NCBI GenBank assembly: GCA_965637545.1
Contig: OZ281497.1
Span: 8,866,001 to 8,930,000 of the forward strand
Reading direction: 5' to 3'
Origin: Phallusia mammillata
Lineage: Eukaryota
DNA: 64,000 nucleotides
A model generated the notes under the pieces. It was not told the origin of the DNA and searched no databases. It saw nothing but the letters and a program-made list of their open reading frames with translations. The number at the start of each line of letters is the position of its first letter. Positions within the stretch are counted from its first letter, which is position 1. The position numbers were made by a program, and so were the translations under genes. Of this stretch, positions 7,017 through 38,699 are shown one piece after another.

Positions 7017-7511
7017 CTATTGTTTTTTCTTCTTGCTTTTCTTTTGTTTTTGCTTCTGAGATTTTTTCTTTTTCCGTTTTTTATTTTCTGTTGATGAATC
7101 TGAGTCTGTAAATGCTTTGCCGGATATCACATCATCTGGATAAAGCTCCATGAAACCAGAGTGACCCCAGCGGTCTGTGTTAGTGGTACTTGTTTTGTGG
7201 ACAGTTGTTGATACTTGTGGAGCTTCACTGCTGCTACTTGATTCTGAATAACTGTCACTTGACGGTGAGCGCCGTCGTTTAGATGATTTTGTTTTCTTTT
7301 TCTTGTCATGTTTGCTTGATTTTCTTCTGCTCTCTTTGTGTTTTTTCCACATTTGTTGTTCTTCTTTCATTCGATTTTCAAGTTCAGCACTCATCACAAT
7401 TTTACTGGCAGCATATTTGTTTATTTTGTTTCGTCCCCATGATTCCATAATTTGTGGACCTATTTTGCAATGGTCCACTTTTTGGTCATCTGTATAAACC
7501 AACATTTCCAT
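7017..7511 (-). CDS. NKAPD1: NKAP domain-containing 1-like (C11orf57-like), Lys/Ser-rich nuclear protein, single coding exon (start 7511 or 7448)
   Basis: NRMKEEQQMWK and DRWGHSGFMELYP match recalled NKAPD1 motifs (NKIQEESDMWK, DRWGHSGYKELYP). Poly-Lys tracts present. Confidence 0.75.
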   Translation of the reverse strand: MEMLVYTDDQKVDHCKIGPQIMESWGRNKINKYAASKIVMSAELENRMKEEQQMWKKHKESRRKSSKHDKKKKTKSSKRRRSPSSDSYSESSSSSEAPQVSTTVHKTSTTNTDRWGHSGFMELYPDDVISGKAFTDSDSSTENKKRKKKKSQKQKQKKSKKKKQ

Positions 7512-7680
7512 TTGATAAGATTTTAGGTAGGAGGATTTCTGGCAATTAAGTTATGAAGCTGTTTAAAAAAAGGTGCAATTACACACAATAATTAGGAAAA
7601 AAAACTTTTATTAGAATAGCTTTGTTTACAGTCAAAAATCAACAAGGAAACCATTATCCACAATTCCACACTATTACAAA

Positions 7681-7937
7681 CCAGTCTGCAGAGTGTGGCA
7701 GCTGCACGCGCGATTTTGTTTTTGAAAAAAATTTTTGCACGCCAAGTTTTGGGGTTTGCACGCGAAAATTTTGCACCAAAGGCATTTAATTGGGCTGTCT
7801 TGACCTCTTTTACTTGCTTTGCGCCTGCTGAAATTGGTCTTGCACGCGAACTTACGGGTCGTGCACGCGCGCACGCGGGACATGTAGGTCCTGCACGCAC
7901 GAGATCTCGTCGGGAACTGCCATGTTCTGCAGACTGG
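7681..7937. mobile_element. MITE with CCAGTCTGCAG termini (257 bp), rich in GCACGCG motifs
   Basis: TIRs CCAGTCTGCAGAGTGTGGCAG / CTGCCATGTTCTGCAGACTGG; perfect 8-bp TSD ATTACAAA (7673-7680, 7938-7945). Second copy at 36646. Confidence 0.9.
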
Positions 7938-9064
7938 ATTACAAAGAAAACATTTACCTGGAGTATACACTACACACACAGTAGTTTTCTTGCAGTGATT
8001 GGTCTTTACTCAGGGTACAGCTGTCTAAAACAAATGTAGAAGAATCATCACTTGATGTATTTTGGTTGCTTTAAAAGGCCCGCTCTCCTGTTGTAACTTT
8101 TAATGAAAAATAAAAGTTTCTTTATTATACAAAACGTTATTGTGGAGTCTGGGAAATCCCCGGGTGGTTTTCCACACAAAGATAAAAAGCAGATTTTGTT
8201 AAAAGGGAAACGGTTGGGTTTATTTCTTTGGATGAAATAAATTGTAGTAGTATGGTTTTTTCTCAGATAGCCACGAGGTCAAAATTGGTTGTAAGACGTT
8301 AAGACTTAGCAAAAATCCTGGGCATTAGCGGATTTTAAACATGTATCGGACCTTGGACTTTTCATGCAAAACATATCGGACTTTGGACTTTTTAATTCAA
8401 AACATTTTAATTCGTGTAATTGTCGTGTCATATCATCACGGTCAACCCCGTTCATAACTCGCCTTTTTCTACACAAAAGCTTGACCGGCTGTTAAAACTG
8501 TTGAAACCTGTTTTACTTATTACTGAACCGGTCAATTACTGCTTAAGGCTATCGTTTTATCATCCCCTTACGTGTTAACAGTAACCCACGCATTACTCGG
8601 CCTCCAGCCATGTTATATATGACACTTCTGTAAAGCGATTTAAAGAATAATTACGGTTTAGAACACAGTTAATCTTTTCGGGCGAACGTTTTACAGCTAA
8701 ACCCGTATAACGAGATTTGACCTGAACACTATAAAGATCGACACATTTTAGACTTAAAATCAGTTTATCTAAAGTTACCTAGAGTTACCATAACAGCGCA
8801 AGAGTGACCAGAGTAAGCATTGGAATTGATATCTCACAGTTGATTCGTGGCGCGGTGACTTTTGTGTTGCGTGTTTAGCCGCAAGAGGCGCTCTCGTGGT
8901 ATGCCTTATTGAAATATAATGTGGGAACGTTAGGCTAGTTTTGCGTCTTGTTGTTCGTTTCGACAGTGATAGTTTGTTTGTTTATTAGAGTCAGATATAC
9001 GGCAGTGTGTTTTTATTGTCTACCCACTGGGTCAGTACAAACATAAATTACTTATATCTTTGAC

Positions 9065-9244
9065 CAGTGGTGGGATTCAGCCGGTTCGCAACGGTTCTGT
9101 AGAATCGTCTCACAAAATTTTATGAGATCAGCGAACCGGTTAGCGTTACTGGCTGCTGTCAATAGACTTTTTGCAACAGATCCGGCTGAAAAATATGACT
9201 TTTGTGATAGAACCGGCGGACAAAAAATTAGAATTCTATCACTG
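9065..9244. mobile_element. hAT MITE (180 bp)
   Basis: TIRs CAGTGGTGGGATTC / GAATTCTATCACTG; perfect 8-bp TSD TCTTTGAC (9057-9064, 9245-9252); internal GAACCGG/CCGGTTC motifs. Confidence 0.88.
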
Positions 9245-10158
9245 TCTTTGACCTTCACAACGAACAACGGCACTGTGATAGATATGTTGGCAGAACACCA
9301 GGTAGGTTAAGGCAACTATTTTAGAGGCACTTAACCCTGGGTTCGCAGATCTTAACAAACACATTTCGAGTAACTTCACGCAGCTCCTGGGCTTCTTCAC
9401 CTTTTTGGTAGCGCATATGTTAAACTTCTTGTTTGTTTTTAAGTTTTGAGTTTTCTCTTGTCCTTGGCGCACAACTAAGATCACTCCAACTTTTATACTG
9501 TAGCAAAAGCACTGAAACGTTATGCCAAAAATACAATCGTTTGTTGCAACGCAGCGCTTGTGTAACATTAAATTCCGTCACGGTAATAAACATAAACATC
9601 TTATATCGTCAACAAGACACAAAACACAGTAAACAAAAATTAAGTTATTTGCACCACGAGCATTGCAAAATAGTCCCAAATTTGTACGCGAAAAAAAATC
9701 AAAAAAGATCGAATGCCAAAGCAGGAAATAAAGGTAAAAATGGCGATACTGTTGCTGACTCTTATTAAAATAATAAAATGGATAAAAACAAAATAATCCA
9801 GTTCTAAAATTATGTGACAGTTCCTAAAACTCAGCTGCATCGCCACATTTCATGTATTTATTGTTCAGCTGTTCAAAACCTCAATACTGTCACTTAATGG
9901 TATAAAAACACGTTTTCTGCTGACGTTACAATGTAGTATACTGGGGCTAACACAGCAACATAAAAAAACTTTTGGACGGATTTATAACACAGACCAATAC
10001 GATTTTGTACATGTTGAACGGAGAGTGCAAAATTTAAGGCCAAAGTCAACAGGACAACTTTGTTTAAAATCAGAATTACAAAACTGTGCATGTTTTTTTT
10101 TAAATTACACAGACGTGAATTGCTACGACTTCTTAAGTTCGAAAGTAGCTAAGCGGCG

Positions 10159-13100
10159 CTATATGAACTCAAATTCGTCCTCTAACGATTTTTCCCCGCT
10201 CGAGTTGGCTTTCGGCGAAGGGCGATAGAGTTTATTAATCATTGCCCGTGAAGTGCTTACAAAATTTAACTTTTTGTCTGGTTTGGTTTGAGGTGCGTTG
10301 CATGAAGCAGTCGCCACCTCCTCCACAGTTGACACCGGTTCTGTCGAAACGGATGGGTTGTCAAAGTCAAATTCGCTCTCCAGAGACAACTCTGTAAAAC
10401 TTGTGTTTCGGCCTTTGGAAAGCACTGTACAAGCCCGGGCCTCTGACAGTCTCCTCATTTTATGTTCTTGCGCACTTCCGTTCTCAATGAGGCAAAGAGG
10501 ATAGCTGTTCCGCTGTTTGGGTGGCGCAAGGAGTTTGTTAGCTTCACTGACAAATTGCTGGAAGTCTTCTTGATCACGACAGTAGAAACAAAGGCAGCAG
10601 CTAGGGTCCAGCTTGTTCACATGCGTCTGTAAAGTGCAAATTACAAGCTTCTGTTTCAAAGAACATTCTATGTAAATGTGACACTGATGTAATGACATCA
10701 TGATTTTAATATGACAAAAATTATCATAAAAAAGATGTGTGTTATTAATCACAAATATTTGTTTGAAAAAGTTTTTGGGTTCTGAAAGGTATCATAAACC
10801 TGGAATATTGTCTTAAAATTTGGGTAAATAAATGAAAAGAAATGTGCATTGGAGGTTTGCACAGCAGAATTGCTTGACTATTTGCTTGGTACATGAGGTT
10901 TCTTGATTTGCCTTGTGATTCAACTTAGTTGTATTGTACATCACTGTATTAAGTCAAACACTAAAAAGGGTATGTTAATTTAACAAAGCAGCAATAATTG
11001 TATAAACTTGTCACCGGGTCATACTGTACAGAAATGCTTTTGCTCTTCCCAAATAAATCATCTAATAATACCAGTGATTCAGTACTAAGTAAACCCTAAG
11101 CCAAGTGTAATTGTTCCACCTAACTTTAATTTAAAAACATTGTTCTGTTTGCTTACCTAAACAGTAACATCACAAGAACCAGTAATAGTCTATTGAAATG
11201 CCTAACAAACAAACATAGATCAGGTTCTTAAAAGTTCTCAAGTATGGTAAATTTATCAGCAAGTGGAAGGATTTGACAAAGGGGGAACAAAGCTAACAAC
11301 ATGTAGAAAAGCTATTTTGGGAATTGGTTAGTGAAATTAGTGTTTTGGGGGACATTGGGTAATTTAAGAAGGGAAGGGAAAATAGAAAAAGGTATAAGCC
11401 TCTGACATATACCCCTACCTTTCTTGGCTGCATACTGTGATAGTTTCCTAACTGCTTGTTGCTGAAAGTTGCAGCAGAGTCAGCTGGTTGGCAGTAATGT
11501 GGGTCCAAATAGAACAAATAGTCATCTAAAAATATCAATGAACCAAATTACCTTGCTGCATTTTTGTATGCATTTTTTTGATTTTATTTTACAAGCCAAA
11601 ACTTCAATCAAACCCCCCCAAAGATGAATGGTATTTAGTATTTAAAGCTTGTAGCTATTTTTAATGAGAGTATATTTTGTTCGACTATGTTACAGTCACT
11701 CATCAAAAAAATTAACAATTGCATGAAAAAATAGTTACCAAATGCAAAATGTGAACTATTAAATTTGGAATACTTAACAACAGACAGTCTTCAGACCATG
11801 TAAAGTTAATCAACAATCCCATTTACTCGGTGACAAAACAAATATATATGTTATACACAGTACACTTGTATTATTTGCCTCACCTTGAAAGCCAACAAAA
11901 TACAAGGAGTGCTTTGGCTTTCCCCCAATAATTCCCATGCACTGATCCAAAGCCAGCATGCCTTTCAAACATGGGCTGTAGATTGGATTTAAACAAGCTT
12001 CACCTAATCTAACAGGGATTAAAATGATCACTGATCGTTTCGGAGGATCATCAGCAGTTATATCAATGTCCACTGGTAGAGATGAAGAATGACCATTGGC
12101 AGTATTGTTTGTTGTAGGTACAGTACCATATTTGTGGTCCTTGTCCCAGTGACAGACTTCAACCACATCTTTACAGTACACTAAAAATAGTGACTTTAAT
12201 TTAGACCTTACTGATCAATGATAATATGACATATATATATATATATATATGTTTAAATTGCTATACAAACTTTACACAGGTTGGTCTTACATTGACAATG
12301 GCTATGTTTTTATAAACTGGCCTATAAAACAGCTTGAAGATGACATAGCATATGATCCCAACATTACAAAACTTCGATTGTAACACAGAATGTAAAAAAT
12401 CAGCTTCGCTTTGCACCTGTGCAGTCTTGAGCAACATATACAACAAGTTCATCTAGCAAGGGATTTAGACCTTTGGCACACTCAGTAGCATCCTGCATTA
12501 TGTAGGCTACTGTTCCAGGCCCATACCAATCCCCAGGAGAAAAACGATAACCTAAACCTAACACAAGAGAAATGCGTTGATTTAAATAAAGAGATAATTT
12601 GTTTCAATTTTTAAGTAAATCTGATATGCAAACAAAAGTTAATCTATTTTTTACAAAATTGTAATATAAAGGCATAAGGGTATCATATGAACATTGCATA
12701 CCACTTAAACAATTAAAAAAACAATGGTTAAACAAAATTATATTTTTATGAACCAATTTCTGTCAGTCTATGGATGCTGAAGGGGCATTTGGAGCTTGGA
12801 TCATCAATAAACCACTTTATAATTGTCCTGTGGATTTCACATTCTTTCAACACCCTTTCTTCTGTTTTTCTTTCCTTTGAGAACCATCTCCAATCACGCC
12901 CTACAAAATGTACCCTTGTATACCTTAATATTGTAAATCTTTGAACTGGTAAATTTTTGTAAAGGTTTCCTGTGGTGCATTTTAGTCTCTCAATACAACA
13001 GTTATCATGCCTTACCTAAAAAATGGGTGATAAAACACTGGGCCATCATCATTTGTGCAGTTCTCAACATACAACCCCATCCAGTGTCAGAAGTTAGACC

Positions 13101-16481: not shown

Positions 16482-16738
16482 ACAAGCACGTTTTACTTAG
16501 CTGTACAGTTTATTAAATGTTTTTTTTTAAACATTTTTTTAATTTAAATTAGTTCCTTTTTCCTCAAGTGGTATCAAACGTTATCGTTTAATTTTCTGCC
16601 TCATATAAAAACAGTATTCGTTCGTATCAGAATCGCAAGCAAAATATTGGCACATCAGTTAGAATTGTGATAAAATAATGAATCTTTGCTGTGCTTTTAG
16701 CTGAAAGGAACAATACAGCGATCATTAAAGTGATTAAA

Positions 16739-19700
16739 ATGGTTTTGAAAAGTCCCTTTCCTAACGTGCGGATTCCGTCAAAACCTTTTGGGAAGTATAT
16801 GCTGGACATGTGGAAAACGTATGGGGACTCTATCGCAGTGGTGAGTGTGCTTGGGCTTGCGAGAAAAAAATTACAAATTCAGTAACACCGATTTTTCACA
16901 AAATGACCCTTAGAGGCATAAAAGCCTTCTTGTTAAAGAATTACGTCAAGATTAAGTTCTAAGTTTCAGCAATTAAGTGCTTAATTTTTTGTAAGTCTTT
17001 AAACACTCATAACGACGTTTCTCTCCGTTTTGTCAAGTTGAGCCATGCAGACATATGATTTCATAAGCTAAAATCAGAAATTTATTTAAGCTTCATTCTA
17101 ACATGCTTCACAACTTGAAACTGTGAGTAAAAATGACGAAGATATTGTGGTGAATAAAAACCTGAAGTTGATTATGCAAATGCTACAATTAAAACGCTTT
17201 CTTTATATTTGGTACCAACTTTTGCAGATCGATGACGCGACGGGAGGGGCCACCTATACGTACAAACAACTACACAGTCATGCTGTCCAGTGTGCAAGCA
17301 TGTTTCGCGGAATGGGTATTACTAGGGGCGACGAGATTGCAATGTGCTGTGTAGTAGGTCATAATAGTCGCATCTGCCTGGTGCGGAGCAATAGTAAAGA
17401 CTTGCGACCCCAACTGCGAAAAAGGTTACAGTTTGTTATGTGAAGAGTAAAACCCAACAGAGTGCAAACAAGTAGTGAAAATTTATTATTCAGATCCATG
17501 TTTAAATTCCTCATTTAAATTTCCTGATTCGTTGTGCAGAAACAAAAAAAAACTACTGCTTGCAAAAGCTCTTTAACTTTAGGGTAAAAAAACTTTAGGG
17601 TTGCTATAGGGTAAAAGCTTAATACTGTGAGCATGCTCTTTGTGTGTGTTAACATTCTGCTAAGAACAGAATAAATCCAATTTGCCTTGTTTGTGGATTG
17701 CAGATGACATGGTATCCGCTCTAAGTCGTTCAAATCCAAAGTTAGTTTTTATCGATGGAGAGAGTTTTATAATGATGAACAGAATTGTAAAGGAATGTGT
17801 TCCTACCATTCAGGTACCTCTGTATAAATGTAATGGACCGTCAGAATAACACATTAATCCCTTCGTTAAGATTGATGTTGTTTGTCTTGTTTTTAAGTTT
17901 ATTTTTTCTGTCAAAAAATGTGAGGATTGTCCGAGCTTCTGGTCTTTGTTGAAAAAGACGAAGGAAATAGGTAAAAATAATTGACAAATTTAAAATACTT
18001 TTGTAAGCCCACGAAACATAATAAAACTTTAAAATAACTGTACACCCTTGTAAGATACATAAAATATCACTCTAATTTGTAGACATTGAAAATGGTGGAA
18101 GTGTAAACGACGCAGTAATGTATATTTCCACGAGTGGCACCACTGGAAAGCCAAAGGATATCATACTTACAAGCGCAAATATGGTGTCGATTTTAACCAT
18201 TTCAAGGTGAATTACATTAAATCAAAATATAGGCTTTCATATATTATCCAGCACATCCAAATCCGTTTTCAAATATTAAAAATATTATTATATCAGGTTT
18301 ATGATACGACTGAATTGTATAGATGCTTATAATCAGTACAGTCTTAAGATAAACTATTTCCGTAGCAATAATCGTAATTGAAACGTAAGGATGGAATGGT
18401 AACCCGCCGGACTTACTAAATATCTGCCACTTGTTCCTCAATGTAATCAGAATCTATCTGTTACAAAATCGTAAGTTATATCACTTTTAGAATCGCACAT
18501 CGCCATTCAAGAAAAGACGTGCTCTTAATGGTGCTTCCCTTATTTCGGGGTGGAGGATTTATGTTTTCTTTTATGTGCCTTGACCAAGGTGCAACATTGG
18601 TTGTGGAAAACAGCACTCCTGTCCGACATGTATTGCAAAGCATAGACAAACGGAAGGTTAGATTTAAACAAGGCAATATAGGCAGAACAAAATCTGCAGG
18701 GGGCAACAATACTGTGGCTTTACACAAACTGCTTTAAACACAGTTTTTAGAACCATAATTTATTTGTTTAAGAGTTTTTGGAGCCAAAATTTATTTTTAA
18801 AAACTTTTCCATCCATTAGCAACGCTAGCAGACGAAAAAAATGCTCACTTTGTTACAAAACAGTACAATGGCCATCACGATGAATTGTGTTTTTTAGGCA
18901 ACCCTGATGATCGCGGTACCAAATTTTCTTTACCAAATGGCGAAATGTGCTCATACGACGCATTATGACACGTCATCGTTAAATCGGATGATATGTGGTG
19001 CAGCCCCAATGCCAAAATATGTCGCTGATTTAGCGGTGAAAGTATTTGGAGCAACAATTATACAAAGTATGTACCAAATGCAAATCCAATAGATATTTTC
19101 CCTCTTTAAAAATGCCAATGTGGCAATTCGAAAAAAAACTTTTTGTACACATATACTACATTTTTGCAAAGAATAGACCAAAAAATAATAAAGCAAAGCA
19201 AACACACGATATAAAAATGTGTAATATGTGTTTATTATTTTACCCAGCTCACAAAAACTCTTCATTACAAAACCTACATTTTGATTACAAAATCACTTGC
19301 AACAGACAATATAAAAGCTAATATGCTTATATGTTAATAATTGCTGCTTTTAAGGTTATGGTTTGTCTGAATGCATGAAAATCACTTCGGGATTAGATCC
19401 AGATTGTCCACAGACATCCGTAGGAACCTTGAATTGCAATATTATGCTAAAGGTAAATATACCACCACTATTGTATCATTAATGTATTGTATCCTATTGT
19501 GACACTTTAGACTAGAGAATCGGACAAAATAGTTGCAAGATTTTCTTCTTCACTTTTACTTTTAGGTAATTGATTTGCAAACTAGAAAGGAACTTGGTAC
19601 TCTGGGGAAAGGGGAACTTTGTGTAAAAGCACCCCAGGTTTGAAAAAAAAAGTTTGTTTTATTTTTACTCGGCGGCGGAAAACGAAAGTAATTGAAACTA

Positions 19701-21205
19701 AATGCTTTTTTGGCGTTTGTGATACCAATTGATACGGCATACATTACTAAACAATGCATTGGTGTACTGGTTGTTTGGTTCGATAATTTAATGAGGTATA
19801 ATCAAACCATTTTTATGTGAGTTTTTTGTATCAAACTCGTTTCATGTGAAAATAATTCGACCAAAAAAACCTTAATTTTTTATGTCTTTGTCTTACTTTT
19901 TTGTTACAAACAGTTAATGAAGGGTTACCTTGACCAGCCCGGGAAAACTGCTCAATGCATTGACTCAGACGGGTGGTTTCACACAGGTGACTACGGTTAC
20001 TATGACAGCCACGGGTATGTGTACGTCATCGACAGGATCACAGACCTTATACAGTGCGGCCAAGCAAAGGTTAAAACTTAAAAATAACACTTTTTTGAAA
20101 CTAAGTATAGTTAAATGAAGTCTAATCCTTGACAGCTACTATAAGTGTTGCTTGTGAATACTAAACTACGGTATATTGATTAGATTTGTTTTTGTCGTAT
20201 CTTTTTATGATGCTCTAAGTCTAAGAGGAAACATGGCACGTCTAATTGTAAGTTAGTACTGATTTACGTATCATTTTTTGGTATTGCTCTAGAGCAGGGG
20301 TCCGCCAATACTTTTTGGCGCGACCCTAAAAAAAATTGCTCTAAATTATCGCGACCCAAGCATTTTGTTAGCATGTAAGTTTGTGGAATATACTAAGCAA
20401 CTAGATATCAATACTATGACTGCTATTATGCTTTGGTCAGTTGCTATTTTCTTGCACAAATTAAAGCGAAACTCAGCACATAAAACAGTATGTAAACGAA
20501 CGTATTTATTCAGCAAAACGGTAACAGAAAAGCATGACCGCTTGCGCAGTTGCGCTTAACTTATTGCATTGTTACATAGACTACGCAGTGACATGTAACA
20601 ATGCAATAATAATTAGGTTGAAAATACTGAAAGTTACTATAGATACTATAAATGCAATGCTTATATTCGACCCAAATTTGGGTCGCGATCCACTATTTGC
20701 GGACCCCTGCTCTAGAGTAGAGTCTAGACATAACTTAGATTATACCAACAAATGCCCAAGCTGGCAGCTACTCATTAAAATCGAACAAAAATTACAATTT
20801 GTAAAGTTTCCAGGTAAATATACTTTATGCATGTTTTGTCCAGTTGGCACCACAGGAATTTGATAACATCTTGTTAAGTCAGCACAAAATTGCTGACGCA
20901 GCGGTGGTAGGTGTACCACATGAAGAGTTAGGGGAAGTACCTGTTGCGTTTGTGGTCAAAAAAGACGCAAACCTAACCGAGGAAGACATTTTACACCACA
21001 TCAGTGGTAAGTAGTAACTTGTGAATGTCTTCCTTTGTTAAGGCTTAATACAATATAAGCTTGTTTTTTTAATGTAGATAAAATGTATTTACACAATCTG
21101 TTACGGGGAAGGATTTGCTTTATAAAAGAAATCCCAAGAGCCGGGTACACTAAAGTTCAACGAAAACAGCTGCGGGAAAGTAGGTTATCGGACAACATAC
21201 TTTGA
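16739..21205 (+). CDS. 4-coumarate:CoA ligase / firefly luciferase-like acyl-CoA synthetase (ANL superfamily), 12 exons, frameshift in exon 2 (possible pseudogene, null allele or assembly error)
   Basis: Exons 16739-16840, 17228-17424, 17704-17813, 17898-17970, 18083-18206, 18491-18656, 18898-19066, 19355-19452, 19566-19637, 19914-20069, 20844-21006, 21078-21205. Motifs YISTSGTTGKPK, GAAP, SYGLSE, GELCVKAPQLMKGY, GWFHTGD, DAAVVGVPHEELGEVPVAFVV and C-terminal Lys (PRAGYTKV). Every junction is phase-consistent except exon 2 (197 nt, 3n+1 needed). Confidence 0.88.
20295..20709. mobile_element. hAT MITE (415 bp) in intron 10 of the ligase gene
   Basis: TIRs CAGGGGTCCGCCAATA / TATTTGCGGACCCCTG; perfect TSD CTCTAGAG (20287-20294, 20710-20717). 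Confidence 0.93.
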
Positions 21206-21219
21206 TTCCACAAGCGAAT

Positions 21220-21753
21220 GGGTGCCTTCGAATACTACAGGTGCGCTAGGTGCGCTTGGTACCCCGCTTGGTAATCATTTTTCGTACAACGTAACTTAAA
21301 AATAGTGCAGGTAACTCTCTTTGGTGCGATTAAACTCATAACAGTTACGACGTAACTCGAAAATACTGCAGCTGTCCTGTTTTTTGCGACAAATCGTAAA
21401 TACTCCAGTGAACGTTAAAACACGCATATAATGCTGGAAAAGTGTTACGATAGTCCTAACACATACCCCAAACTTAAACCCTAAACTTAAACCCTAACCC
21501 TAACCCTAACCCTAACCCTAACCCTAACCCTAACCCTAACCCTAATCTTAACCAAATCATTAAAAACAGTACCTTCAGCATTATTACGTTACGTCGCAGT
21601 AACTACAAGTTTCCTCGCTTCAAAAAAGGTTACCTGCACTATTTTAGGGGTTTGTTGCATTAAAACGAGTTACCTGTAGCATACCTAGCGAAGTACCTAG
21701 CGGACTAAGCGCACTTAGCGCACCAAGCGGACCTGCTGTTTTCGAAGGCACCG
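21220..21753. mobile_element. MITE with 9-bp TSD (MULE- or Merlin-like) carrying an internal telomere-type array
   Basis: TIRs GGTGCCTTCGAA / TTCGAAGGCACC; TSD CAAGCGAAT (21211-21219, 21754-21762); long internal inverted segments (AAATAGTGCAGGTAAC / GTTACCTGCACTATTT). Confidence 0.85.
21492..21545 (-). repeat. Interstitial telomere-type repeat (TTAGGG)9 with degenerate flanks
   Basis: Nine perfect CCCTAA units on the + strand inside the 21220-21753 element. Confidence 0.95.
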
Positions 21754-23496
21754 CAAGCGAATAAAGCTGACCGATTTGCTTCTTTTTCTTTCGAGCCACG
21801 TTTCCAAGTCCAAAAATACAATAAACTTAGTTGAAAATCACATCGTTCACGTCTTAGTTAACACATTTTTTTGGCAAGTTTAATGTGTATGTACCAGATC
21901 AGTTTGGTTGGTGCTTAAAACTGTCGGATTCTGAAGAATCTACGACCTTCTGTGGAATTAGAAAATCGAAATATGGGTGTTAAGCTTGGGCCTGAAACAA
22001 ATTCAAGCTTAGGTTATCCTCAGACAAAAGAAGACAATAATACACTTGTTGCGTTGTTTGACTGCGATTTGATGAATCTGACACGAGAATAGGTTTCATT
22101 TCATATAAATAACGGGTTCAAATCTTTGAACTTAAGTTCGCATGCACTTATTACATAGGCAAACCCGGCGCAAGAGGTTCCGCCTCTGTTCCAAAGGATG
22201 CTTTGCTTTTAAAAAAACTGGGTGATAAATACAACATCCTTCAGAATGTTATCGTTGTCAAACAAATTTTTACAGGTCAAAATGTGAAACGTGTTTTAGA
22301 CCGATCATCTACAACTGCTCATGGTTTATATTTTTGTGTTACTTGCTGCACCATTGATAGATGCATGTACGAAGACAGTAAATGCAGAACAATTTATTTT
22401 GCAATTCCACGCAATTAAGCAGAGAAATATAGTGTGGTTTTAGTAAATCTTTTATTCAGTAACCCACAATGTTTAGACAAGCCACAGCTGGTACATAATT
22501 AGTTTCCTATTAGCTATATTGAGAAACTTTTCATGATATATCTCAAGCATGTAGCTTAAGAAACTAGTTTATATAGTTTCCTCCGACGAATAAAGTTTTT
22601 TATTACTTCCCGTCATGTATAGGCCTACAACATGTCCATATAAAGCGCACTCTTTCAAAAAACTCTGTCGCAAGGCTTTTGGTTACGAATTGTGACTGTA
22701 TGGGCCAGGTATTGATGTACTATCACAAGTTTGTCATTTCTGCACACAAACGATAATTTCTTGTTTTGCCAAAAAACATCAGGATTTAGTTGTTATTTTT
22801 CCAAGTAAATCTTTTTGCAGAAGTATATTTGCAAACATGGTTTTGACAACCTCAGGCCCAAGACTTTCGTTTACTTTGTTGATTAGTGAAAAAGATCAAT
22901 GTTAACTAGTAACTTCCGGAAAGCTAGTTAAAAGGCGAAACTAATGTATATAGACATCACCTGATTGTGTGTTGCCGCTACAGAAAAAACAATGAACTTT
23001 TACTGCGAATACATATAAGGTCAAGCCTAAGTTGACTCTAATATAGTTAACATAAACATAATAGGGGGAAACCTGCCAGCTGTCGACAAACGGAAGTTAG
23101 CTGAGCGTGTGAAGTGACAAAGTGCACAACCTTCTAGCCTTTACAGGATGAAGACCTCTAAAGCTGCAGTTGACCAAAGCTTGCAGTACATTAAAAGAAC
23201 ACAGTTGCCGTTAGACACGTACAAAGTACAACACAGACTTTAAAAGAAGAAACTTGGCGAGCCAAAGCGTTGTTGGAAAGAATAATGGTCATTGTGGTGA
23301 AAGAATAAATTAGAATACATTTTGAGACAGTGAGTTAGAACGTGCGCACAAAGACATTCAGTATTTGCGTTTACCTAATGATAATTTCGAACAATTTACC
23401 GAGTCAAAACTAGAAACAGTATGACCACCAGTAACGTGCATTTTTCATCATTTTTTTCGTCATTTTTTATTTTTCGCAGAACACTGACAAATAAAC

Positions 23497-24180
23497 ATGG
23501 CCGAAGCGTTAACTGATAAATTTGAGGTCAAGAGCCTGACTATGGAAGACTACGAGAAAGAGGTCGCCGATTTCATTCAGGAGTTTTACACAAAAGGCGA
23601 CGTGCTTTTCCAAGCCTCAAATTCGACGTTGGAGGACGAAAATGGCATTTACGAGTTTCGGGCAAAAGTAGCCATCCAACATCATGGAGCTTCATTTGGG
23701 ATGTACGAAAAATCTACAGGAAAGCTAGTGGCGGTCAAGGTGAATTTCGTGCACAGCAAAAACTGCACCAGCACCCCTACCAGCATGCTGAGCGAGAAGT
23801 ATAGCTCAGAGAACATGTCCGAAAATGCCGAAGTTGTGATTCGTTTTGTAGACGTTTTTTTGGGCGACGTCTTTACTGAATTGCAGACCGACAAGTACAT
23901 GGAACTAGGCATGACCTGCGTTCATCGTGATTTTACAAAACTAGGAATGGCAACTTATCTAGGCAAACTTAGCGAGATCAGAGCCAAGGAACTGGGGTGT
24001 CAGTACTTGGTGTCGTTTGCAACTTCGGCGTACTCTCAGAAGATATGCGCCAAATTCGGATTTACACTCCTCCGTGAGATTGTGTACGCAGACTACGTTG
24101 ATAAACCTACTGGCAAAAAGCCCTTCAAATCAATTCCTGGACAAACGCACGCAAGGCTCTTTTACCAAAAAATATGCTGA
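23497..24180 (+). CDS. GNAT N-acyltransferase resembling insect-type arylalkylamine (dopamine) N-acetyltransferases, 227 aa, single coding exon
   Basis: Acceptor TTTTCGCAG ends at 23479, just before the ATG. C-terminal LGMTCVHRDFTKLGMA...ATSAYSQKICAKFGFTLLREIVYADY resembles insect Dat/AANATL (ILSVD..YRGLGIA...CSSHYSARVMEKLGF....FADY). Confidence 0.8.
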   Translation: MAEALTDKFEVKSLTMEDYEKEVADFIQEFYTKGDVLFQASNSTLEDENGIYEFRAKVAIQHHGASFGMYEKSTGKLVAVKVNFVHSKNCTSTPTSMLSEKYSSENMSENAEVVIRFVDVFLGDVFTELQTDKYMELGMTCVHRDFTKLGMATYLGKLSEIRAKELGCQYLVSFATSAYSQKICAKFGFTLLREIVYADYVDKPTGKKPFKSIPGQTHARLFYQKIC

Positions 24181-26187
24181 GCAATAGTATGACTGTGTGG
24201 CAAGCTTAGTAGGCACTGAACAACTGCAGTTTTTCTTCGAACTGTATGAAAACATAATTTAGCACCCCTGCATTAATGCTTTACTGTTAATTCTGAACAC
24301 AAACATCATACCATTTTACAAGCCTTTCAAAGCAACCGGACACTGACGTTGTTACGTGTCAATGGTGCCGCCTGTGACATCACAACCATCATCATGCAGC
24401 AAGACTTTTCGTTGCTAAGTTTTTGCTAACGATTTGGTTAACTATTTTAACAAATAATAGCCAGTAATGTTATCCAGTCTTGAATATCCCATATACCATT
24501 CTAGGAAACTCCATTTTGATGAATATGTTTGTTATTTTGCAACGTTGCGTCAGAATGATAATGTGCTGAAAGTCGTTGTACGTGCTAGCGCTAAATATAT
24601 ATAACACAGAACATGACTCGATTAGAATGGGTTGTCATAAATTACAGTGTCGTACAACGGACAAATGCCTTGAACTCTACAGTGCACGCACCAAAGATGT
24701 TTGTTGGCGTTTGAAACCGTGTATATTTGCAAAAGGCTATTTTATGCATAAACAACTACAGTAATTTGTTTTTCGCAAGCGTTGTGACGTCAGCTAAATA
24801 AACAGACGTTGAATTGATGTAGATGGCGTTCGTGTGACGTATTTTGAGTTGTTTTCAAAGGAAAACGAACTAAACAGACTTTAGTAGCTACCATTAGTAT
24901 CAATTTTGAGCACAATGTTAAACGCTGAATCAGTATTACGGCTTCGTCATTCAATACGTGAAGCACTATAATTTTAACGGCTGTCAAAGCACAGGCCTGT
25001 CTCCCTGTAGGCTTGGAACTGATTTGCATTAAGTTTGGTGACGCGATGGTGTGAGTTTATAGCGTAGCGCGCAGTTAATGCTGGTGCTTAAATTCTATTT
25101 TTTGACGAGGTGGATCAAGCGAGTTCATGTTTGTTTTACAAAGCTTTATAACAATCTTTTACGTCGCATTAAAGCGCGTAAATTGCAACATGTCATAGCT
25201 GTAGTAGTACAAGCTTTCTGACAGGCAGGTAACAAAGAGAGTGCGAATATCTGTTTTAAGGTTTTTCATTGCAGGCAAAAAGCATTACGCTTTGAGATTC
25301 ACATTTGTGTGTTTATATTACTTTGACAGCAAGAAAGCCTTTAGTTATTTACGAAAAGGGCTACTTCGCAAATCCAATCGTTATGAGTGCCACATAGTTC
25401 GAAATTAGTCGTACTATGCAAAAATATGGTAAGTTTTGTTCAATAACTCTTTCAACGTATGTTCGACATCGCTATAAAAAAAAATTTTTAGTTTTTGGTA
25501 CGAATACAGAGTTGTTTTCACTCACAGCGCAGCACACGCAGTCGTCATTCATTGGCAGCATATCATATGATTCGTCTTTCACTCACAGCATGACAAAATA
25601 GTCGTTTCTTTTTGTGGTGCCTTTAGCCAGGTGGGGATTGGAGGCAAGACTCACAGCCCATTGTCTAGTTATAAAGGTGCAAAAGCAGTTTAAATTAACT
25701 CGCAAGTAACCAGCTTAGGGCCTATATAATAACATTTGTATTGTCATTACAACATAAATTGTTAGCACAAAGATAGTATTTGGGTGTGAAACATCACAAT
25801 AATTCGGCAGTTCCTATTGTCCTCCCTTCTGTTGGTTTTATTTCACCTAACGATGACAATACAAACCTTCGAAATGTTATGATGTTTTACACTCAACTAC
25901 TGGCTTGTATAATTTGCTCACAACAATTAGAATCGTACATTGTGTACCTACGTGAGGTTCAACATTGTACATTAACACGCTTGTCCGCACAAAATTAGTA
26001 AATATGGGCGCAGCCCTTTTCAGGAATTATGCCAACGTAGGTACGAATAACAATTTTCAAGAGAAGGTTTAATTGCGTCAACTTACAAAAAGAGAATTTA
26101 GTGACTAAAGACTAAACTTAGATATTAAATATTTTTTACCTCAAACAGGTACCACGTGCCCAAAATAGCTAACACAATAAACGTAGT

Positions 26188-26895
26188 ATGACACCGAATT
26201 GTGACGCACGTTTACTGCTACAACGTATATCCGCCCAACATAATGACGCGATGCCTTTTCTGAACCGAATCGTCAACTACAACGTCACAGTTGACCCATT
26301 GTATGAAACAGCTCAGTCAAGCATCGATAAATGCACAAAATGGGAAAATTTCAGACTTGGCGGAGCGTTGAAGAAAAACGGCGCATTTGTGTATGAAGAA
26401 ATTGGTTCAAAGCGAATTGCTTCAATGCTCATTCGCTCAGCTCACGACTGTCGCGCTCCAAATACTTCCCTGCTGTTGGAATATGCAAAATTAAAACCTG
26501 ACAATCTGGGAAATCCCCTCGATGCGATTCTGGAATTTACAGGGCAAGTAGCGAAGGAAACGTTGCAGGACGTAAGGACTAACCGGTATGTGTGTTTAAA
26601 GGCGCTGTATACCGACGAACACTTTGTGAGACAGGGTTTAGCCCGTTCTTTGTTGTATAACAATGAAGTATGGGCGCGTTATCAAGACTACGACACTGTT
26701 TTAGCCTTAAGTACCTCAAGACATTTGACTAGCTTGCTGGAAACCTCCGGTTATACTTTGCAAAGAAGTGAACAGTTGCCAAAATTTGCAGAAATGAGCA
26801 AGGTCAACCAGAGATGTGGAAAACCTGTTGTCAAATCCCAAGCATTTTTGTGTGTGTTTGTTAAACGTTTGTGTAGATTTATTCCCAAGCTTTGA
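26188..26895 (+). CDS. Second, divergent GNAT N-acyltransferase (AANAT-like), 235 aa, single coding exon
   Basis: Acceptor ends at 26148. YVCLKALYTDEHFVRQGLARSLL (motif A, RQGLA) and LSTSRHLTSLLETSGY parallel the upstream paralog; similar length. Confidence 0.68.
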   Translation: MTPNCDARLLLQRISAQHNDAMPFLNRIVNYNVTVDPLYETAQSSIDKCTKWENFRLGGALKKNGAFVYEEIGSKRIASMLIRSAHDCRAPNTSLLLEYAKLKPDNLGNPLDAILEFTGQVAKETLQDVRTNRYVCLKALYTDEHFVRQGLARSLLYNNEVWARYQDYDTVLALSTSRHLTSLLETSGYTLQRSEQLPKFAEMSKVNQRCGKPVVKSQAFLCVFVKRLCRFIPKL

Positions 26896-31880: not shown

Positions 31881-34800
31881 CTACTTTGTGGCTGATTGTA
31901 GATCCTGAATTTCCTCCTCAAGTGTATTGATTTTCTCATTTCTCTGAACTGTGGCCGCTGCAATAATCTGCTGGGCCTGTTTGAATGACATGTACTGTAT
32001 GTCACGTACCAAAATATCTGGTGATGCTGTGGCAAGTTTGTGAAGATTGTGATATCCTAGTTTGTGCAATTGCTTAGCTCTAGCAAGCTTCACACCAGGA
32101 ATTTCCATCAACATTGTCAGTTCTGGTGAAGTACTAAACTGCAAGGATTTCATTACTCTTTCAAAAAGTGCTGTATATGGCCAAAACTTTTCTACTTCTT
32201 CAGTAAAATGCAAAGTGCTTGAGGCAAAAGCAACTGTGCTTGATAACAAGTTTTGAAGAAAACCTCTTGGCTGATTAAACTGTGAGGCAACATCCCATAT
32301 CGAGCGACCTTTGTACAGCTGGTACAGCATGATTGTAACATAAAACCGTCTAAACACCAGTTCATTAACTTTGGTCTTTCTCAAATTTCTGCCTGATGCT
32401 TTAAGTGCAATATAATGTTCAGAAATCCCCACAGCAGACGCTGCTTTGACATCACCAGGGGAAAAATTATTCATTTCATTTAAGTACATCAGCCAGTTAG
32501 GGTCAACAGAGTGTGCTGCTTCATAAGGGGTCACGAGGTATAATAAATGGAAATAATTCTCCAAGACTAAGCCATGCAGCCCATGTTCCAAGTCATGAAA
32601 TAGTAACTCACTTATGTTAATATCCACGGAACCTTTATGCACAGCACAACCTATAGTGGATATCTCTAAAGCACCATCATCTGTTTGGGACACAAGGTTC
32701 AGTTCCAGTAGTTCCTTCAATGAATTGTCAACAATACTACTGATAACATTGCTTGATTTCTCACCAATAGCATCCAACATACCAGGTGACGCCTGTTTTA
32801 TCGTGGACACCTGCTTTGAAAACAGTGTATGTTGAAAATAGTCACACACATCAGACTGGCTTTTAACCACTCTAAGACCAATTAGGTTTAGCAGAAGTGC
32901 TTTGAAACCTTTGCCATTGTCATACATCATGCTGCTTAAACACATCTCAATGTGTCCACTTAACAAATGTTTCACCTTTTCTTTGTCTCTGTTGTCAAAT
33001 ATTAAGAAACTTTCACCTTTTGTGTCAATACCAGCTCTGCCGGCACGACCAATCATTTGTTTGTATTGTGCACAGGTCATAAATGAACGACCAACATATG
33101 GTGAGCGGATAATGACCCTTCTAGCTGGTAAGTTGACTCCTGCAGCTAGGGTAGATGTGCATGTAATTACAGATATCGCACCACTTCTGTACGCATTTTC
33201 AATTAGTTGCCTTTCATCAGATGTTAAACCACTGTGGTGATAGGCAATACCATAGGGAATAGTACCTTGCAAAATCGGACATATAACACCATCAGATTGT
33301 AAATACATTTCATTCAAAAGTGTCATTTTTTCCTTTTCTTTGTGTGTAAAAAATGTTTTAGGCAATAGCTTACAAATTAATACTGCAACATTCTCACAAT
33401 TCTTTTTCGTTGGACAAAACACAAGGCAAGAATGGTCAGGCACAACTTCTTTTATTAACGTAGACAACTGATCAGAATCAGCTTTTTCAGTTTCCTTTGT
33501 CTCCGAAAATATAGTGCGGACATGTGTCAGTTCTTCTCCAGCCCTTAACTTGTTGCTATCTACCTCATAGATATGATTGTCCACTTTAACATATTCAGAT
33601 AATTCTACAGGCCTGAAATCATCAGTAAATGTCTGTGCATTCAGAAAAGATGCCAGTTCATCAATATTTCCAATTGTAGCAGACATGCCTACAATCTGAC
33701 TGTCAGGATTTTGATGTATGACCTTTGTTAACATAGATTCCAATGTAGCACCGCGCTTTCCACCTTCCCCTAGCATATGCAACTCATCAACAACATACAA
33801 ACCTATTTCCTCCAGCCTTTGCTCATCAATAAGTGAGTTTACCAATGAGTTGGCTTTTTCCATAGTGCAAATGTAAAGCACATTTTTAGATCGCCTTTTT
33901 CTTGGAGGGAACCTGCCTTTGCTACCAGCATATTCTTCAACAAGAAAATCACACTCCATAGCGAATAATGCAATACTTTGAACCTTTTCTTGAGCTATAG
34001 CAACAAATGGAACGACCAAAACTGCATTTTTATGTTTACACAATATAGTCCGCATTATCAATATTTCAGCTACTAAAGTTTTTCCACCACTGGTAGGCAA
34101 GGAGTAAATTAGGTTTTGACCTGAGGTTACACCATCCATTGACAAGCACTTGTGTTGCCAATCATACAATGTATCAATTCCCCTTGAAGATTTTAAAAGC
34201 TCTTTCACTCTCTTTGGCAAACCATAAAAATCTTCCTCATTGTGCGTCAATTGGTTGTCATGTTTTTTTATTGGTTTAATCATTGGCGAAACCTGTGCAT
34301 TGTTTTGCAACTTTTGCCTTATTCGATCTGACAAGTTTGATATAACTTTTGTATTTTTTGGAGTGGAGGTCGACATATTCTCAAACAGTTTTTCGGCAAA
34401 AGGTGATGATGCTTCTGTGTGTTTGCTTTTAATGTTATTACTTGTTTCAGTTGAATCAACTTGTGTCAAAACTGTAGCCTGTTCTTCAGCTTGAGGAGCA
34501 AAACATTGCTTCTCCAGTAATGATAAATCAACATTGTCAAACACAGAGTCTTGTAGTATGCTCATTTCATGACTGGAATTGCACAGTTTGTTATGTTTTG
34601 TTCCTTCATCACTTCCTGTTTCCATAAAGTAATCTACATCATTTTCATTCTGTTCAAACAATGAAGGTGACCCAGATCTGGCAAGATTGTTTTTTGATAC
34701 TGTTTTGCTTTCTTGTTTTGGGGAAAGTGAAGATTTACTGTTAACAAGTGGCACTGTGGCTTTGCTTTTCATGTCATTGCTGAATATTTCTACACTGCTA

Positions 34801-34883
34801 TTAGAGTCTAGCAATGAGAGCTGAGTCAGACTTGATTTTCTTCGCTTTTTACTGAGACGCTTTGGGGTGTTTCTTGTCTTCAT
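31881..34883 (-). CDS. HELQ: Helicase POLQ-like (HEL308), 1000 aa, intronless
   Basis: Single ORF with SF2 motifs SLPTSGGKT, VVDELHML, GMSATIGN, AYHHSGL, TSTLAAGVNLPARRV, QMIGRAGRAG and C-terminal HhH (EIPGVKLARAKQL). No polymerase domain, so HELQ rather than POLQ. Confidence 0.95.
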   Translation of the reverse strand: MKTRNTPKRLSKKRRKSSLTQLSLLDSNSSVEIFSNDMKSKATVPLVNSKSSLSPKQESKTVSKNNLARSGSPSLFEQNENDVDYFMETGSDEGTKHNKLCNSSHEMSILQDSVFDNVDLSLLEKQCFAPQAEEQATVLTQVDSTETSNNIKSKHTEASSPFAEKLFENMSTSTPKNTKVISNLSDRIRQKLQNNAQVSPMIKPIKKHDNQLTHNEEDFYGLPKRVKELLKSSRGIDTLYDWQHKCLSMDGVTSGQNLIYSLPTSGGKTLVAEILIMRTILCKHKNAVLVVPFVAIAQEKVQSIALFAMECDFLVEEYAGSKGRFPPRKRRSKNVLYICTMEKANSLVNSLIDEQRLEEIGLYVVDELHMLGEGGKRGATLESMLTKVIHQNPDSQIVGMSATIGNIDELASFLNAQTFTDDFRPVELSEYVKVDNHIYEVDSNKLRAGEELTHVRTIFSETKETEKADSDQLSTLIKEVVPDHSCLVFCPTKKNCENVAVLICKLLPKTFFTHKEKEKMTLLNEMYLQSDGVICPILQGTIPYGIAYHHSGLTSDERQLIENAYRSGAISVITCTSTLAAGVNLPARRVIIRSPYVGRSFMTCAQYKQMIGRAGRAGIDTKGESFLIFDNRDKEKVKHLLSGHIEMCLSSMMYDNGKGFKALLLNLIGLRVVKSQSDVCDYFQHTLFSKQVSTIKQASPGMLDAIGEKSSNVISSIVDNSLKELLELNLVSQTDDGALEISTIGCAVHKGSVDINISELLFHDLEHGLHGLVLENYFHLLYLVTPYEAAHSVDPNWLMYLNEMNNFSPGDVKAASAVGISEHYIALKASGRNLRKTKVNELVFRRFYVTIMLYQLYKGRSIWDVASQFNQPRGFLQNLLSSTVAFASSTLHFTEEVEKFWPYTALFERVMKSLQFSTSPELTMLMEIPGVKLARAKQLHKLGYHNLHKLATASPDILVRDIQYMSFKQAQQIIAAATVQRNEKINTLEEEIQDLQSATK

Positions 34884-36898: not shown

Positions 36899-37079
36899 AA
36901 CAAAAAAACTTTTGTTTTATTTAAAGTAGGAAAGAAAGAAACAGCACAGGAGATGCCCCTGGTGAATTCATTTATTAACTTAAAAAAGATAAATAAAAAA
37001 CATATTTTTTAATCATAGCTTTGTAAGTTTTAAATTTTACAGTTTTGTTTGGTCTAAAGTGGACATACAAAAAACCTTG

Positions 37080-38699
37080 ATGTCTACTAGTGTTAACCCT
37101 AAACACAGAACATTTCTGTCAAATGACTTCAACAGCAAAAAAACTCAGACCTGGGCTGCAATTAGCATTGGTGTAGTCATTTTTGCATTTGGCATTCCTA
37201 TTTGGTGGAAGACTACTGAAGTTTACAGGGCTTCTTTGCCATTTGATGAAATCTCTTCATTGTATGAAGATAAAAGTCTGATTGTAAAGGTTCCAATATT
37301 GGTAAAAGTTCCAGAAAATGCAGACAATGTTGCAGACATTCTTACCAACGCATTAAAACTTGATTTAAATAATGACATGAAAGGTCAAATAAAGTTTTTG
37401 TACAGCTTTGATGATATGAATTCCAAAAGTAACAAGTTTACTGGCATTGTAATTAGGTTACATGTCAAGTCAACTGAACAGATGGAAGCACATGTAGCCA
37501 AAGATGGGACAATCACATGCACTCTACCAAATACAGAAAAGAACACAATCGATCAATTATCATTACTTATTAGGGATTTAATCAAAGATGTCATTATTAA
37601 CGAAGCCCTCTTGCATCATATGGTTGGAAACATTTATCGAACCACACATGAGGATCGACATGACAGAAATCTAATTAAAATGGTGCAAGCCAATCCAAAA
37701 TTTGAGCTATTGTTTTCCTTGCTCTGTCCAGAGCCACAAGTTCAAGCTGCAACCTGGGACATGGAAAAAGACTCTGAAATGTTTTTGACACCAATGTTAA
37801 ATAAACTACAGCATTTGTTTGATTTTCATGTCGGATCTCAGATTTTATACTACACCGCTATACCGTACAAGCCCAAAGTAAAAAAGGATGAACAAAATAA
37901 GGCTTTGTATCGGTACCTCACACCACAACAGTTGTCATTGGTGATAAACCCAATTGAAGGTCGACTTGGATCACAAGTGTCTTCAGATCCAACACTAAAC
38001 TTTGTCGTTTATCTTACTGAAAAAAAGTTTACACCATTGTACATTAAAACTGAGAATGGTGACCTTTCCAAAAGTAATGCTTTTCTGGTCCCAAGATGGG
38101 GCTCAATGCAGTTCTACAACATAAAAAACATAAGTGAATCAAATGGCCTGACAAGAGTTGATCCTCAAATATTTATGAGTGCATTTATTCCCCATCTCCG
38201 TATTCTTCTTGGCTTGCAAAATAATCCATATGTTGGGGAACAGATCATTTTCGAGGATGCTGGGTATGAAAATATAGCAGACTGGGAATTAAACTACTTG
38301 TACAGGCTAAGAACTGTAGAGCATATAGCCTCTTCAATTCACACGCTCCACTCATTGTCAAAGCTTTTAAATCAAATCAGTAACATAGTGATAAATGACA
38401 ATATTGCCACTGAGGTGTATGATGCTGTTGAATCAATAATCAAAGCCAAAGCTGCACTTAAAAATGGTGACCTTGAGACTGCTTTGAAATATTCGAAAAA
38501 AGCGTTTATAGCTTCTGAAACTGCATTTTTTGACCCTACTCTATTGGAATTACTGTATTTTCCAGAGGACCAAAAATTTGCAATTTATATTCCACTATTT
38601 CTGCCAATTAGTTTACCAATATTGATTTCCTTACGCTACGCTTTTCAAAGATGTCGCAAAAAGGATTTTGATGAGGAAGAAAAAGAAAAAACTGATTAA
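37080..38699 (+). CDS. PIGS: GPI transamidase component PIG-S, 539 aa, intronless CDS
   Basis: ATG at 37080 after the acceptor TTTTACAG (37042). N-terminal TM (IGVVIFAFGIPIWWKTTEVYRASLP), AFLVPRWG, ASETAFFDPTLLELLYFPEDQKFAIYIPLFLP and C-terminal KEKTD ER-retrieval-like motif all match PIG-S. Confidence 0.96.
   Translation: MSTSVNPKHRTFLSNDFNSKKTQTWAAISIGVVIFAFGIPIWWKTTEVYRASLPFDEISSLYEDKSLIVKVPILVKVPENADNVADILTNALKLDLNNDMKGQIKFLYSFDDMNSKSNKFTGIVIRLHVKSTEQMEAHVAKDGTITCTLPNTEKNTIDQLSLLIRDLIKDVIINEALLHHMVGNIYRTTHEDRHDRNLIKMVQANPKFELLFSLLCPEPQVQAATWDMEKDSEMFLTPMLNKLQHLFDFHVGSQILYYTAIPYKPKVKKDEQNKALYRYLTPQQLSLVINPIEGRLGSQVSSDPTLNFVVYLTEKKFTPLYIKTENGDLSKSNAFLVPRWGSMQFYNIKNISESNGLTRVDPQIFMSAFIPHLRILLGLQNNPYVGEQIIFEDAGYENIADWELNYLYRLRTVEHIASSIHTLHSLSKLLNQISNIVINDNIATEVYDAVESIIKAKAALKNGDLETALKYSKKAFIASETAFFDPTLLELLYFPEDQKFAIYIPLFLPISLPILISLRYAFQRCRKKDFDEEEKEKTD

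Follow-up and report, generated by a model that had tools for sequence, protein, structure and literature searches.

Animals rarely have metabolic gene clusters. Described systems with which the locus considered here can be compared include Drosophila Ebony, a beta-alanyl-dopamine synthase that is a single polypeptide in which a phosphopantetheine carrier stands between an ANL-type adenylation domain and an AANAT-fold condensation domain, and the plant pair of 4-coumarate:coenzyme A (CoA) ligase (4CL) and tyramine N-hydroxycinnamoyltransferase (THT). Insect-type arylalkylamine N-acyltransferases (iAANATs) have a catalytic Glu in a DEPLN motif (Glu47 of Dm-AANATA), a conserved Arg153 and an active-site His (PMC6070697). 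The literature on such enzymes in tunicates is sparse; homologues were reported earlier in Ciona and Saccoglossus, so that the presence of the family in a tunicate is not in itself new (PMC4394704). As for gene organization, Ciona operons are made up of same-strand genes less than 100 bp apart, usually 0 bp (PMC2760879), and the majority of genes in Ciona undergo trans-splicing at acceptor sites within their 5' untranslated regions (UTRs) (PMC11155486). The tunicate Phallusia mammillata, which is rich in compounds derived from dihydroxyphenylalanine (DOPA) and trihydroxyphenylalanine (TOPA) (PMC3039461), carries a locus in which an acyl-CoA ligase gene of the ANL superfamily is followed by two genes for iAANAT-like members of the GNAT family, here called GNAT1 and GNAT2. 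The locus was analysed within a window of 64,000 nucleotides, meaning the whole stretch of DNA under study (assembly GCA_965637545.1, contig OZ281497.1, positions 8,866,001 to 8,930,000 of the forward strand), and all coordinates below are those of this window.

On balance, the neighbouring ligase and GNAT1 genes appear to be joined by read-through or operon-like transcription, and a shared pathway of the three genes appears improbable. All three enzyme genes lie in a row on the plus strand, with the ligase at 16739-21205 (12 exons, stop codon at 21203-21205), GNAT1 at 23497-24180 and GNAT2 at 26188-26895. The gaps between them measure 2291 nt (ligase to GNAT1) and 2007 nt (GNAT1 to GNAT2), in line with the three consecutive plus-strand genes about 2-2.3 kb apart that a previous, sequence-only reading of this DNA had described. 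Its statement that no other gene lies in between was borne out as well, as no intergenic open reading frame (ORF) of at least 60 amino acids between the three genes had a Pfam match, and the locus gave neither an Rfam family nor a tRNA when scanned for them. The recognizable non-gene content of the region consists of two repeats resembling miniature inverted-repeat transposable elements (MITEs), the first inside intron 10 of the ligase and the second shortly behind its stop codon, and the window has no runs of N.

The link between the ligase and GNAT1 was seen in RNA. In run X6, contigs that end at ligase exon 10 (20069) and at exon 11 (21006) have the same 29-nt continuation, which occurs once in the window, at 23480-23508. 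The two donors, AAG/GT at the end of exon 10 (20067-20071, plus strand) and GTG/GTAAGT at the end of exon 11 (21004-21012, plus strand), the latter with exon 12 skipped, are thus both joined to a polypyrimidine tract and CAG 3' splice acceptor at 23461-23479 of the plus strand. The GNAT1 exon begins at 23480, 17 nt ahead of the ATG, and 23479/23480 is the only site in the 200 nt upstream of GNAT1 that strongly resembles an acceptor. Since k-mer overlap cannot yield such junctions, exons 10 and 11 were cis-spliced to the GNAT1 exon, and the ligase and GNAT1 share one transcript from the same haplotype as the window. The sequence-only reading had suggested that the three genes could be co-regulated, and for the ligase and GNAT1 these junctions lend that idea unexpected physical support; GNAT2 lies outside this support.

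A ligase-GNAT1 fusion protein was considered and ruled out by in-frame stops in both junction forms. The exon 10 chimera reads ...QAK-NTDK before a stop at 23492, 2 nt before the GNAT1 ATG, and the exon 11 chimera reads ...HHIS-EH before a stop at 23485, 9 nt before the ATG. What the chimeras encode is a truncated ligase from which the C-terminal subdomain or the A10 lysine is lost, and which is also frameshifted on the window haplotype. Within the range covered by the read-set examination (16600-22599), X6 depth was about zero over 21000-21799, so that exon 12 and the MITE were essentially uncovered, and a small X6 contig lay in the spacer at 21878-22034. This spacer, measured between the stop codon of the ligase and the acceptor of GNAT1, has a length of 2274 nt, which falls to 1731 nt if the MITE is absent. 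The X6 RNA contig 20582-21006 opens inside intron 10 and continues through exon 11 to the exon of GNAT1; it may mark either retention of the intron or an internal, possibly repeat-derived start site for a GNAT1 leader.

The MITE past the ligase is a 543-bp element at 21211-21753, with 36-nt terminal inverted repeats, a target duplication of about 9 nt and a telomere-like (CCCTAA)n tract at approximately 21476-21545, and it sits 5 nt past the ligase stop. Runs X2 and X4 join 21210 straight to 21754, and the element is therefore an insertion polymorphism. In the MITE-free allele, an AATAAA poly(A) signal (21760-21765, plus strand) follows 12 nt past the ligase stop, and on the window haplotype the MITE pushes this signal 543 nt further downstream. 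The repeat in intron 10 (20287-20717) has 24-nt terminal inverted repeats that are 96% complementary. Both repeats have enormous contig depth in the read sets, and the intron 10 repeat is among their most repeated sequences, with a word depth of up to about 1.6e5 in X2.

These elements suggest how the chimeras may arise. The acceptor at 23479/23480 would be the ordinary 5'-UTR acceptor of GNAT1, probably for a spliced leader, given that acceptors of this kind are trans-spliced in most genes of Ciona. Ligase transcription would continue 2.3 kb into GNAT1, and the unterminated ligase transcript would meet the GNAT1 acceptor as the next strong one. The displacement of the poly(A) signal by 543 nt of hairpin-forming MITE would favour such read-through and is a plausible cause of the skipping of exon 12. 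On this view, the chimeras would either come about as by-products of such read-through or betray a unit organized like an operon, though with a spacer of unusual length.

The ligase itself became apparent as a chain of ANL exons in stop-to-stop frames of the plus strand. Exons 1 to 3 are at 16739-16840, 17228-17424 and 17704-17813, exon 4 runs from 17898 or 17925 to 17970 (there are two possible acceptors), and exons 5 to 12 follow at 18083-18206, 18491-18656, 18898-19066, 19355-19452, 19566-19637, 19914-20069, 20844-21006 and 21078-21205. For six of the introns, run X6 supplies spliced RNA contigs with GT..AG ends, the remaining exon boundaries are canonical GT..AG too, and the start previously placed at 16739 is correct. 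Four exon pieces matched the Pfam domain AMP-binding (PF00501) at successive profile positions, with E values of 4e-4 to 6e-6 that fall under the whole-protein cut-off only because each piece is a single exon, and the penultimate exon matched AMP-binding_C (PF13193) with an E value of 7e-12. Among PDB entries, the exon of the hinge region is nearest to the luciferases of beetles and the 4-coumarate:CoA ligases of plants (E about 1e-13), with fatty-acyl-CoA synthetases ranking behind them. The core motifs of ANL enzymes comprise the A3 P-loop, A5, A7, the A8 hinge and the A10 lysine, and the spliced translation contains TSGTTGKPK, YGLSE, HTGD, VIDRITDLI and PRAGYTKVQR. Judged by its sequence, the product is a luciferase/4CL-type member of the ANL superfamily, as first proposed, with Pfam domains and closest PDB relatives in agreement, and it is predicted that it probably activates a fatty or aromatic acid. 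Its C-terminus, -NIL, does not resemble a type 1 peroxisomal targeting signal (PTS1).

The frameshift noted at the outset in the ligase of this assembly is real and turned out to be an allele. Exon 2 of the window shifts frame near 17350, and the spliced coding sequence ends at codon 101. At this site (17343-17357, plus strand), runs X4, which is DNA from a separate study, and X8 carry an extra 14 nt plus two or three nearby substitutions relative to the window, and the alleles reconstructed from the two runs are identical to each other. With this allele, all 12 exons are open and give a stop-free protein of 514-523 amino acids, the range reflecting the two alternative exon 4 acceptors, with every ANL core motif intact; in our own reading, the stretch regained in this way fits the common ANL pattern with no gap in the alignment. 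The intact allele was present in two of the three read sets covering the deletion site, and is carried by other individuals. The deleted allele is likewise real, transcribed and spliced, as an X6 RNA contig (record 16, 17227-17424) corresponds to exon 2 with zero differences from the window. The frameshift is accordingly a segregating null allele; it does not mark a fixed pseudogene, nor does it stem from the assembly. Assembly error was dismissed on the grounds that an independent spliced RNA contig matches the window and two runs share one alternative allele. A tiny intron was also considered and rejected, as only 16-17 nt would be removable, there is no suitably placed AG and the RNA contig keeps the stretch.

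GNAT1 is a protein of 227 amino acids encoded by a single, intact coding exon. By itself it matched Aedes aaNAT2 (PDB 4fd5) with an E value of 1e-7, and a profile of 40 family sequences matched 4fd5 at 2e-32 and Drosophila Dat (3te4) at 2e-22 over the full length. Its AlphaFold (AF2) model has a predicted local distance difference test (pLDDT) score of 92.8, and its top 23 fold matches in the PDB, with template-modelling (TM) scores of 0.71-0.84, are insect iAANATs together with the Ebony C-terminal domain and a polyamine acetyltransferase from a chlorella virus, after which generic GNATs follow at about 0.5. The Ebony domain (6dym) is a significant match of the family in both profile and fold. 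GNAT2 is an intact single exon of 235 amino acids (214 if counted from Met22 at 26251) with 21% identity to GNAT1 (BLASTP, E 4e-10). It had no sequence match in the PDB; it aligned to the family profile with 95% probability (hhalign), and the top 21 fold matches of its AF2 model (pLDDT 87) are iAANATs with TM scores of 0.62-0.72. GNAT1 and GNAT2 are thus divergent paralogs of the iAANAT family, profile and fold agreeing with the insect-type assignment made earlier (2e-32 for the GNAT1 family, 95% for GNAT2), and they are predicted probably to N-acylate an amine from acyl-CoA.

At the active site, both proteins differ from the insect enzymes. The counterpart of DEPLN is KGDVL in GNAT1 (Asp35-Val36) and VDPLY in GNAT2 (Asp-Pro), so that Asp replaces the catalytic Glu; in the alignment of 40 family sequences, this column holds E in 13, D in 10 and N in 6. 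The position of Arg153 is occupied by Thr147 in GNAT1 and by Val in GNAT2, and the column of the conserved His has Gln216 in GNAT1, with His218 two residues on, and GNAT2 is without a His. Retained features are the G-x-A in the CoA loop and, in GNAT1, the Ser pair. GNAT1 ends in -KIC, which is not PTS1-like. GNAT2 ends in -PKL (26875-26895), a PTS1-like tripeptide.

An exhaustive search with GNAT1 found 232 relatives; among 20 of these, those with names were all from Ciona or Styela, one being arylalkylamine N-acetyltransferase 1-like. A word-index search returned one relative for GNAT1 and only the query itself for GNAT2, and exact-protein look-ups with either gave no contigs. A GNAT1 ortholog with 71% identity is present on a 2.2-kb contig of another species (L001); between the two, dN is 0.20 and dS is saturated, which leaves dN as the one usable value, and GNAT1 is therefore constrained.

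The conservation of the gene order was examined from the GNAT side, by searching 10 kb on either side of homologue loci, or as far as the contig end, with the full intact ligase (tblastn). Ten distinct contexts were covered, two in Ciona, two in Styela and six on other contigs, namely those of a 52% homologue (7-11 kb contigs), of the 71% ortholog (2.2 kb) and four large or medium ones. None of the 10 neighbourhoods contained any similarity to an ANL ligase. The adjacency that the pathway proposal would have across relatives was therefore not conserved as far as could be reached, paralogs being mostly what was compared, and most likely it is peculiar to this lineage and does not represent a pathway cluster favoured by selection. 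The recurrent feature of these neighbourhoods was instead tandem GNAT pairs, and judging from such pairs in other genomes, tandem duplication is common in the iAANAT-like family. Same-strand pairs 8-9 kb apart were observed on contig L015 (27-638 and 10079-10681) and on contig L010 (2075-2239 and 11011-11196). The latter contig, from Styela clava (OZ123514.1), also has, at 7259-11220, a model of the unrelated mevalonate-diphosphate-decarboxylase (MVD) gene that ends 10 nt before a same-strand iAANAT-like gene in an operon-like arrangement, and the second iAANAT-like copy lies about 8 kb upstream.

Several points weigh against read-through or operon-like transcription without a metabolic link as the full account. 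The co-transcription of precisely these two enzyme types would also be expected of a pathway unit, insect iAANATs accept long-chain acyl-CoAs, and in Ebony an adenylation domain of the ANL type is coupled to one with the AANAT fold (PMC6070697). The examined homologue loci were paralogs of 29-52% identity, the contig of the clear ortholog being just 2.2 kb long; the causal role given to the MITE is our inference; and the chimeras are known from contigs of one run (X6) of the MITE-bearing haplotype, which speak for their presence and not for their proportions. It is possible, if rather unlikely, that the locus is a constitutive operon-like unit, in which GNAT1, and perhaps GNAT2, would have no promoter of its own, would normally be transcribed from the ligase promoter and would be freed by spliced-leader trans-splicing at 23480, with the chimeras arising on the side in small amounts and owing nothing to the MITE or to a metabolic connection. 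The acceptor 17 nt ahead of the GNAT1 ATG, used by two ligase donors, and the spacer RNA at 21878-22034 would fit such a unit, as would the frequency of operons and 5'-UTR trans-splice acceptors in ascidians (PMC2760879, PMC11155486) and the Styela family member that begins 10 nt past the upstream MVD model. However, neighbouring genes in Ciona-type operons adjoin one another at less than 100 bp (PMC2760879), and here the distance is 2274 nt (1731 nt if the MITE is left out); moreover, the MITE-free allele has an AATAAA behind the ligase stop, and the RNA comes from one data set of the MITE-bearing haplotype. The least probable of the readings is that the ligase is decaying in this lineage and that its exons now serve mainly as an untranslated leader or promoter donor for GNAT1. 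The frameshift allele is consistent with decay, as are the lack of X6 coverage of exon 12 while exons 10 and 11 join GNAT1, and the X6 contig 20582-21006, whose beginning in intron 10 is compatible with an internal start site. Yet restoring the 14 nt yields 12 open exons with all ANL core motifs, two of three read sets at the site are intact, and contigs cannot prove the absence of exon 12.

The pathway proposed by the sequence-only reading, in which the ligase makes an acyl-CoA, be it fatty, cinnamoyl-type or other, and GNAT1 and/or GNAT2 pass the acyl group to an arylalkylamine to yield N-acyl amines as a co-regulated two-step pathway, appears improbable. Such a pathway would parallel insect Ebony, or 4CL with THT in plants, in a split form that works through CoA. 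In its favour are the same-strand, consecutive arrangement with no gene intervening, the splicing of ligase exons onto the GNAT1 exon in RNA, the ability of iAANATs to use long-chain acyl-CoAs (PMC6070697), the place of the Ebony C-terminal domain among the fold and profile matches of the GNAT family, and purifying selection on GNAT1. Against it, an ANL gene lies beside 0 of 10 other family loci, and the ligase of the reference individual is a null allele and therefore dispensable, at least when heterozygous or in that animal. The chimeric RNAs are without the ligase C-terminal subdomain that bears the A10 lysine, and both GNATs have Asp for the catalytic Glu and no Arg153, with GNAT2 also without the conserved His. 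The three C-termini differ (-NIL, -KIC and -PKL) and thus give no sign of a shared compartment, and the tunichromes and morulin of P. mammillata are modified peptides and not obvious acyl-CoA:amine products (PMC3039461). It is possible that the GNATs use the ligase product, and nothing in the analysis supports it; with no conserved adjacency, a null reference ligase, a truncated chimeric ligase and altered GNAT motifs, the two-step N-acyl-arylalkylamine pathway was left unsupported. A narrower version, in which the ligase and GNAT1 (perhaps with GNAT2) form a lineage-specific co-transcribed unit, a split CoA-mediated counterpart of Ebony that makes N-acyl amides of the catecholamine or tyramine type in an ascidian noted for chemistry of the dehydrodopamine kind, is a shade more doubtful still. 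If such a unit did exist, the natural 14-nt null allele would offer a ready-made knock-out for a product search.

The trio is bounded by minus-strand genes on both sides, with exons of an ATG4-like cysteine protease (Peptidase_C54) at 10159-12181 and a BAG-domain gene from 27886. Further out are an NKAP-like ORF (7017-7511, minus strand), a HELQ/POLQ-like helicase as a long intronless ORF of 1000 amino acids (31881-34883, minus strand), PIG-S as another of 546 amino acids (37059-38699, plus strand) and the first exon of an OATP/SLCO transporter (48672-49391, plus strand). PIG-S is 99% identical to a Phallusia mammillata UniProt entry, its next matches being other tunicates at 40-54%. With the helicase and PIG-S, single-exon housekeeping genes seem to be common in the window.

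Both enzyme types belong to known families, and the read-through or operon-like link between the ligase and GNAT1 is well documented. A segregating MITE at a poly(A) signal goes along with transcripts in which an upstream gene is spliced to the acceptor in the next gene's 5' UTR, and a natural null allele of the ligase has been documented. Both points bear on the annotation of this genome, in which gene predictors may fuse or break these models. An acid activator transcriptionally linked to an amine acyltransferase would, in a relative of the chordates, merit testing, above all in a species with so many DOPA- and TOPA-derived compounds (PMC3039461), and the comparison of null and intact animals is a cheap natural experiment on the pathway idea.

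Set beside the known systems, the ligase shares AMP-binding, AMP-binding_C and the core motifs with firefly luciferase, plant 4CL and the Drosophila CG6178-type synthetases, and differs from them in the absence of a PTS1-like C-terminus and in the null allele of the reference. GNAT1 and GNAT2 resemble the insect iAANATs (Drosophila Dat/AANATA, AANATL2/L7 and AgmNAT; Aedes aaNAT2 and aaNAT5b) in profile and fold and depart from them at the DEPLN Glu, Arg153 and the conserved His. With Ebony, the locus has in common the pairing of an activator of the ANL superfamily with an amine-acylating module of the iAANAT fold, whereas the Phallusia genes are separate, the chimeric RNA encodes no fusion, the ligase is of the CoA-ligase and not the nonribosomal peptide synthetase (NRPS) type, and Pfam scans of the locus ORFs and exon pieces gave no match to a carrier domain. 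The plant pair offers, by analogy, the same reaction scheme of an ANL ligase and then a GNAT, although THT belongs to a different GNAT lineage and the Phallusia fold and profile matches are all of the iAANAT type. In its transcription, the locus is like the Ciona operons in having a same-strand pair on one primary transcript, a single-exon downstream gene and an acceptor just before the ATG, and it is set apart from them by a spacer of 1.7-2.3 kb where theirs is below 100 bp.

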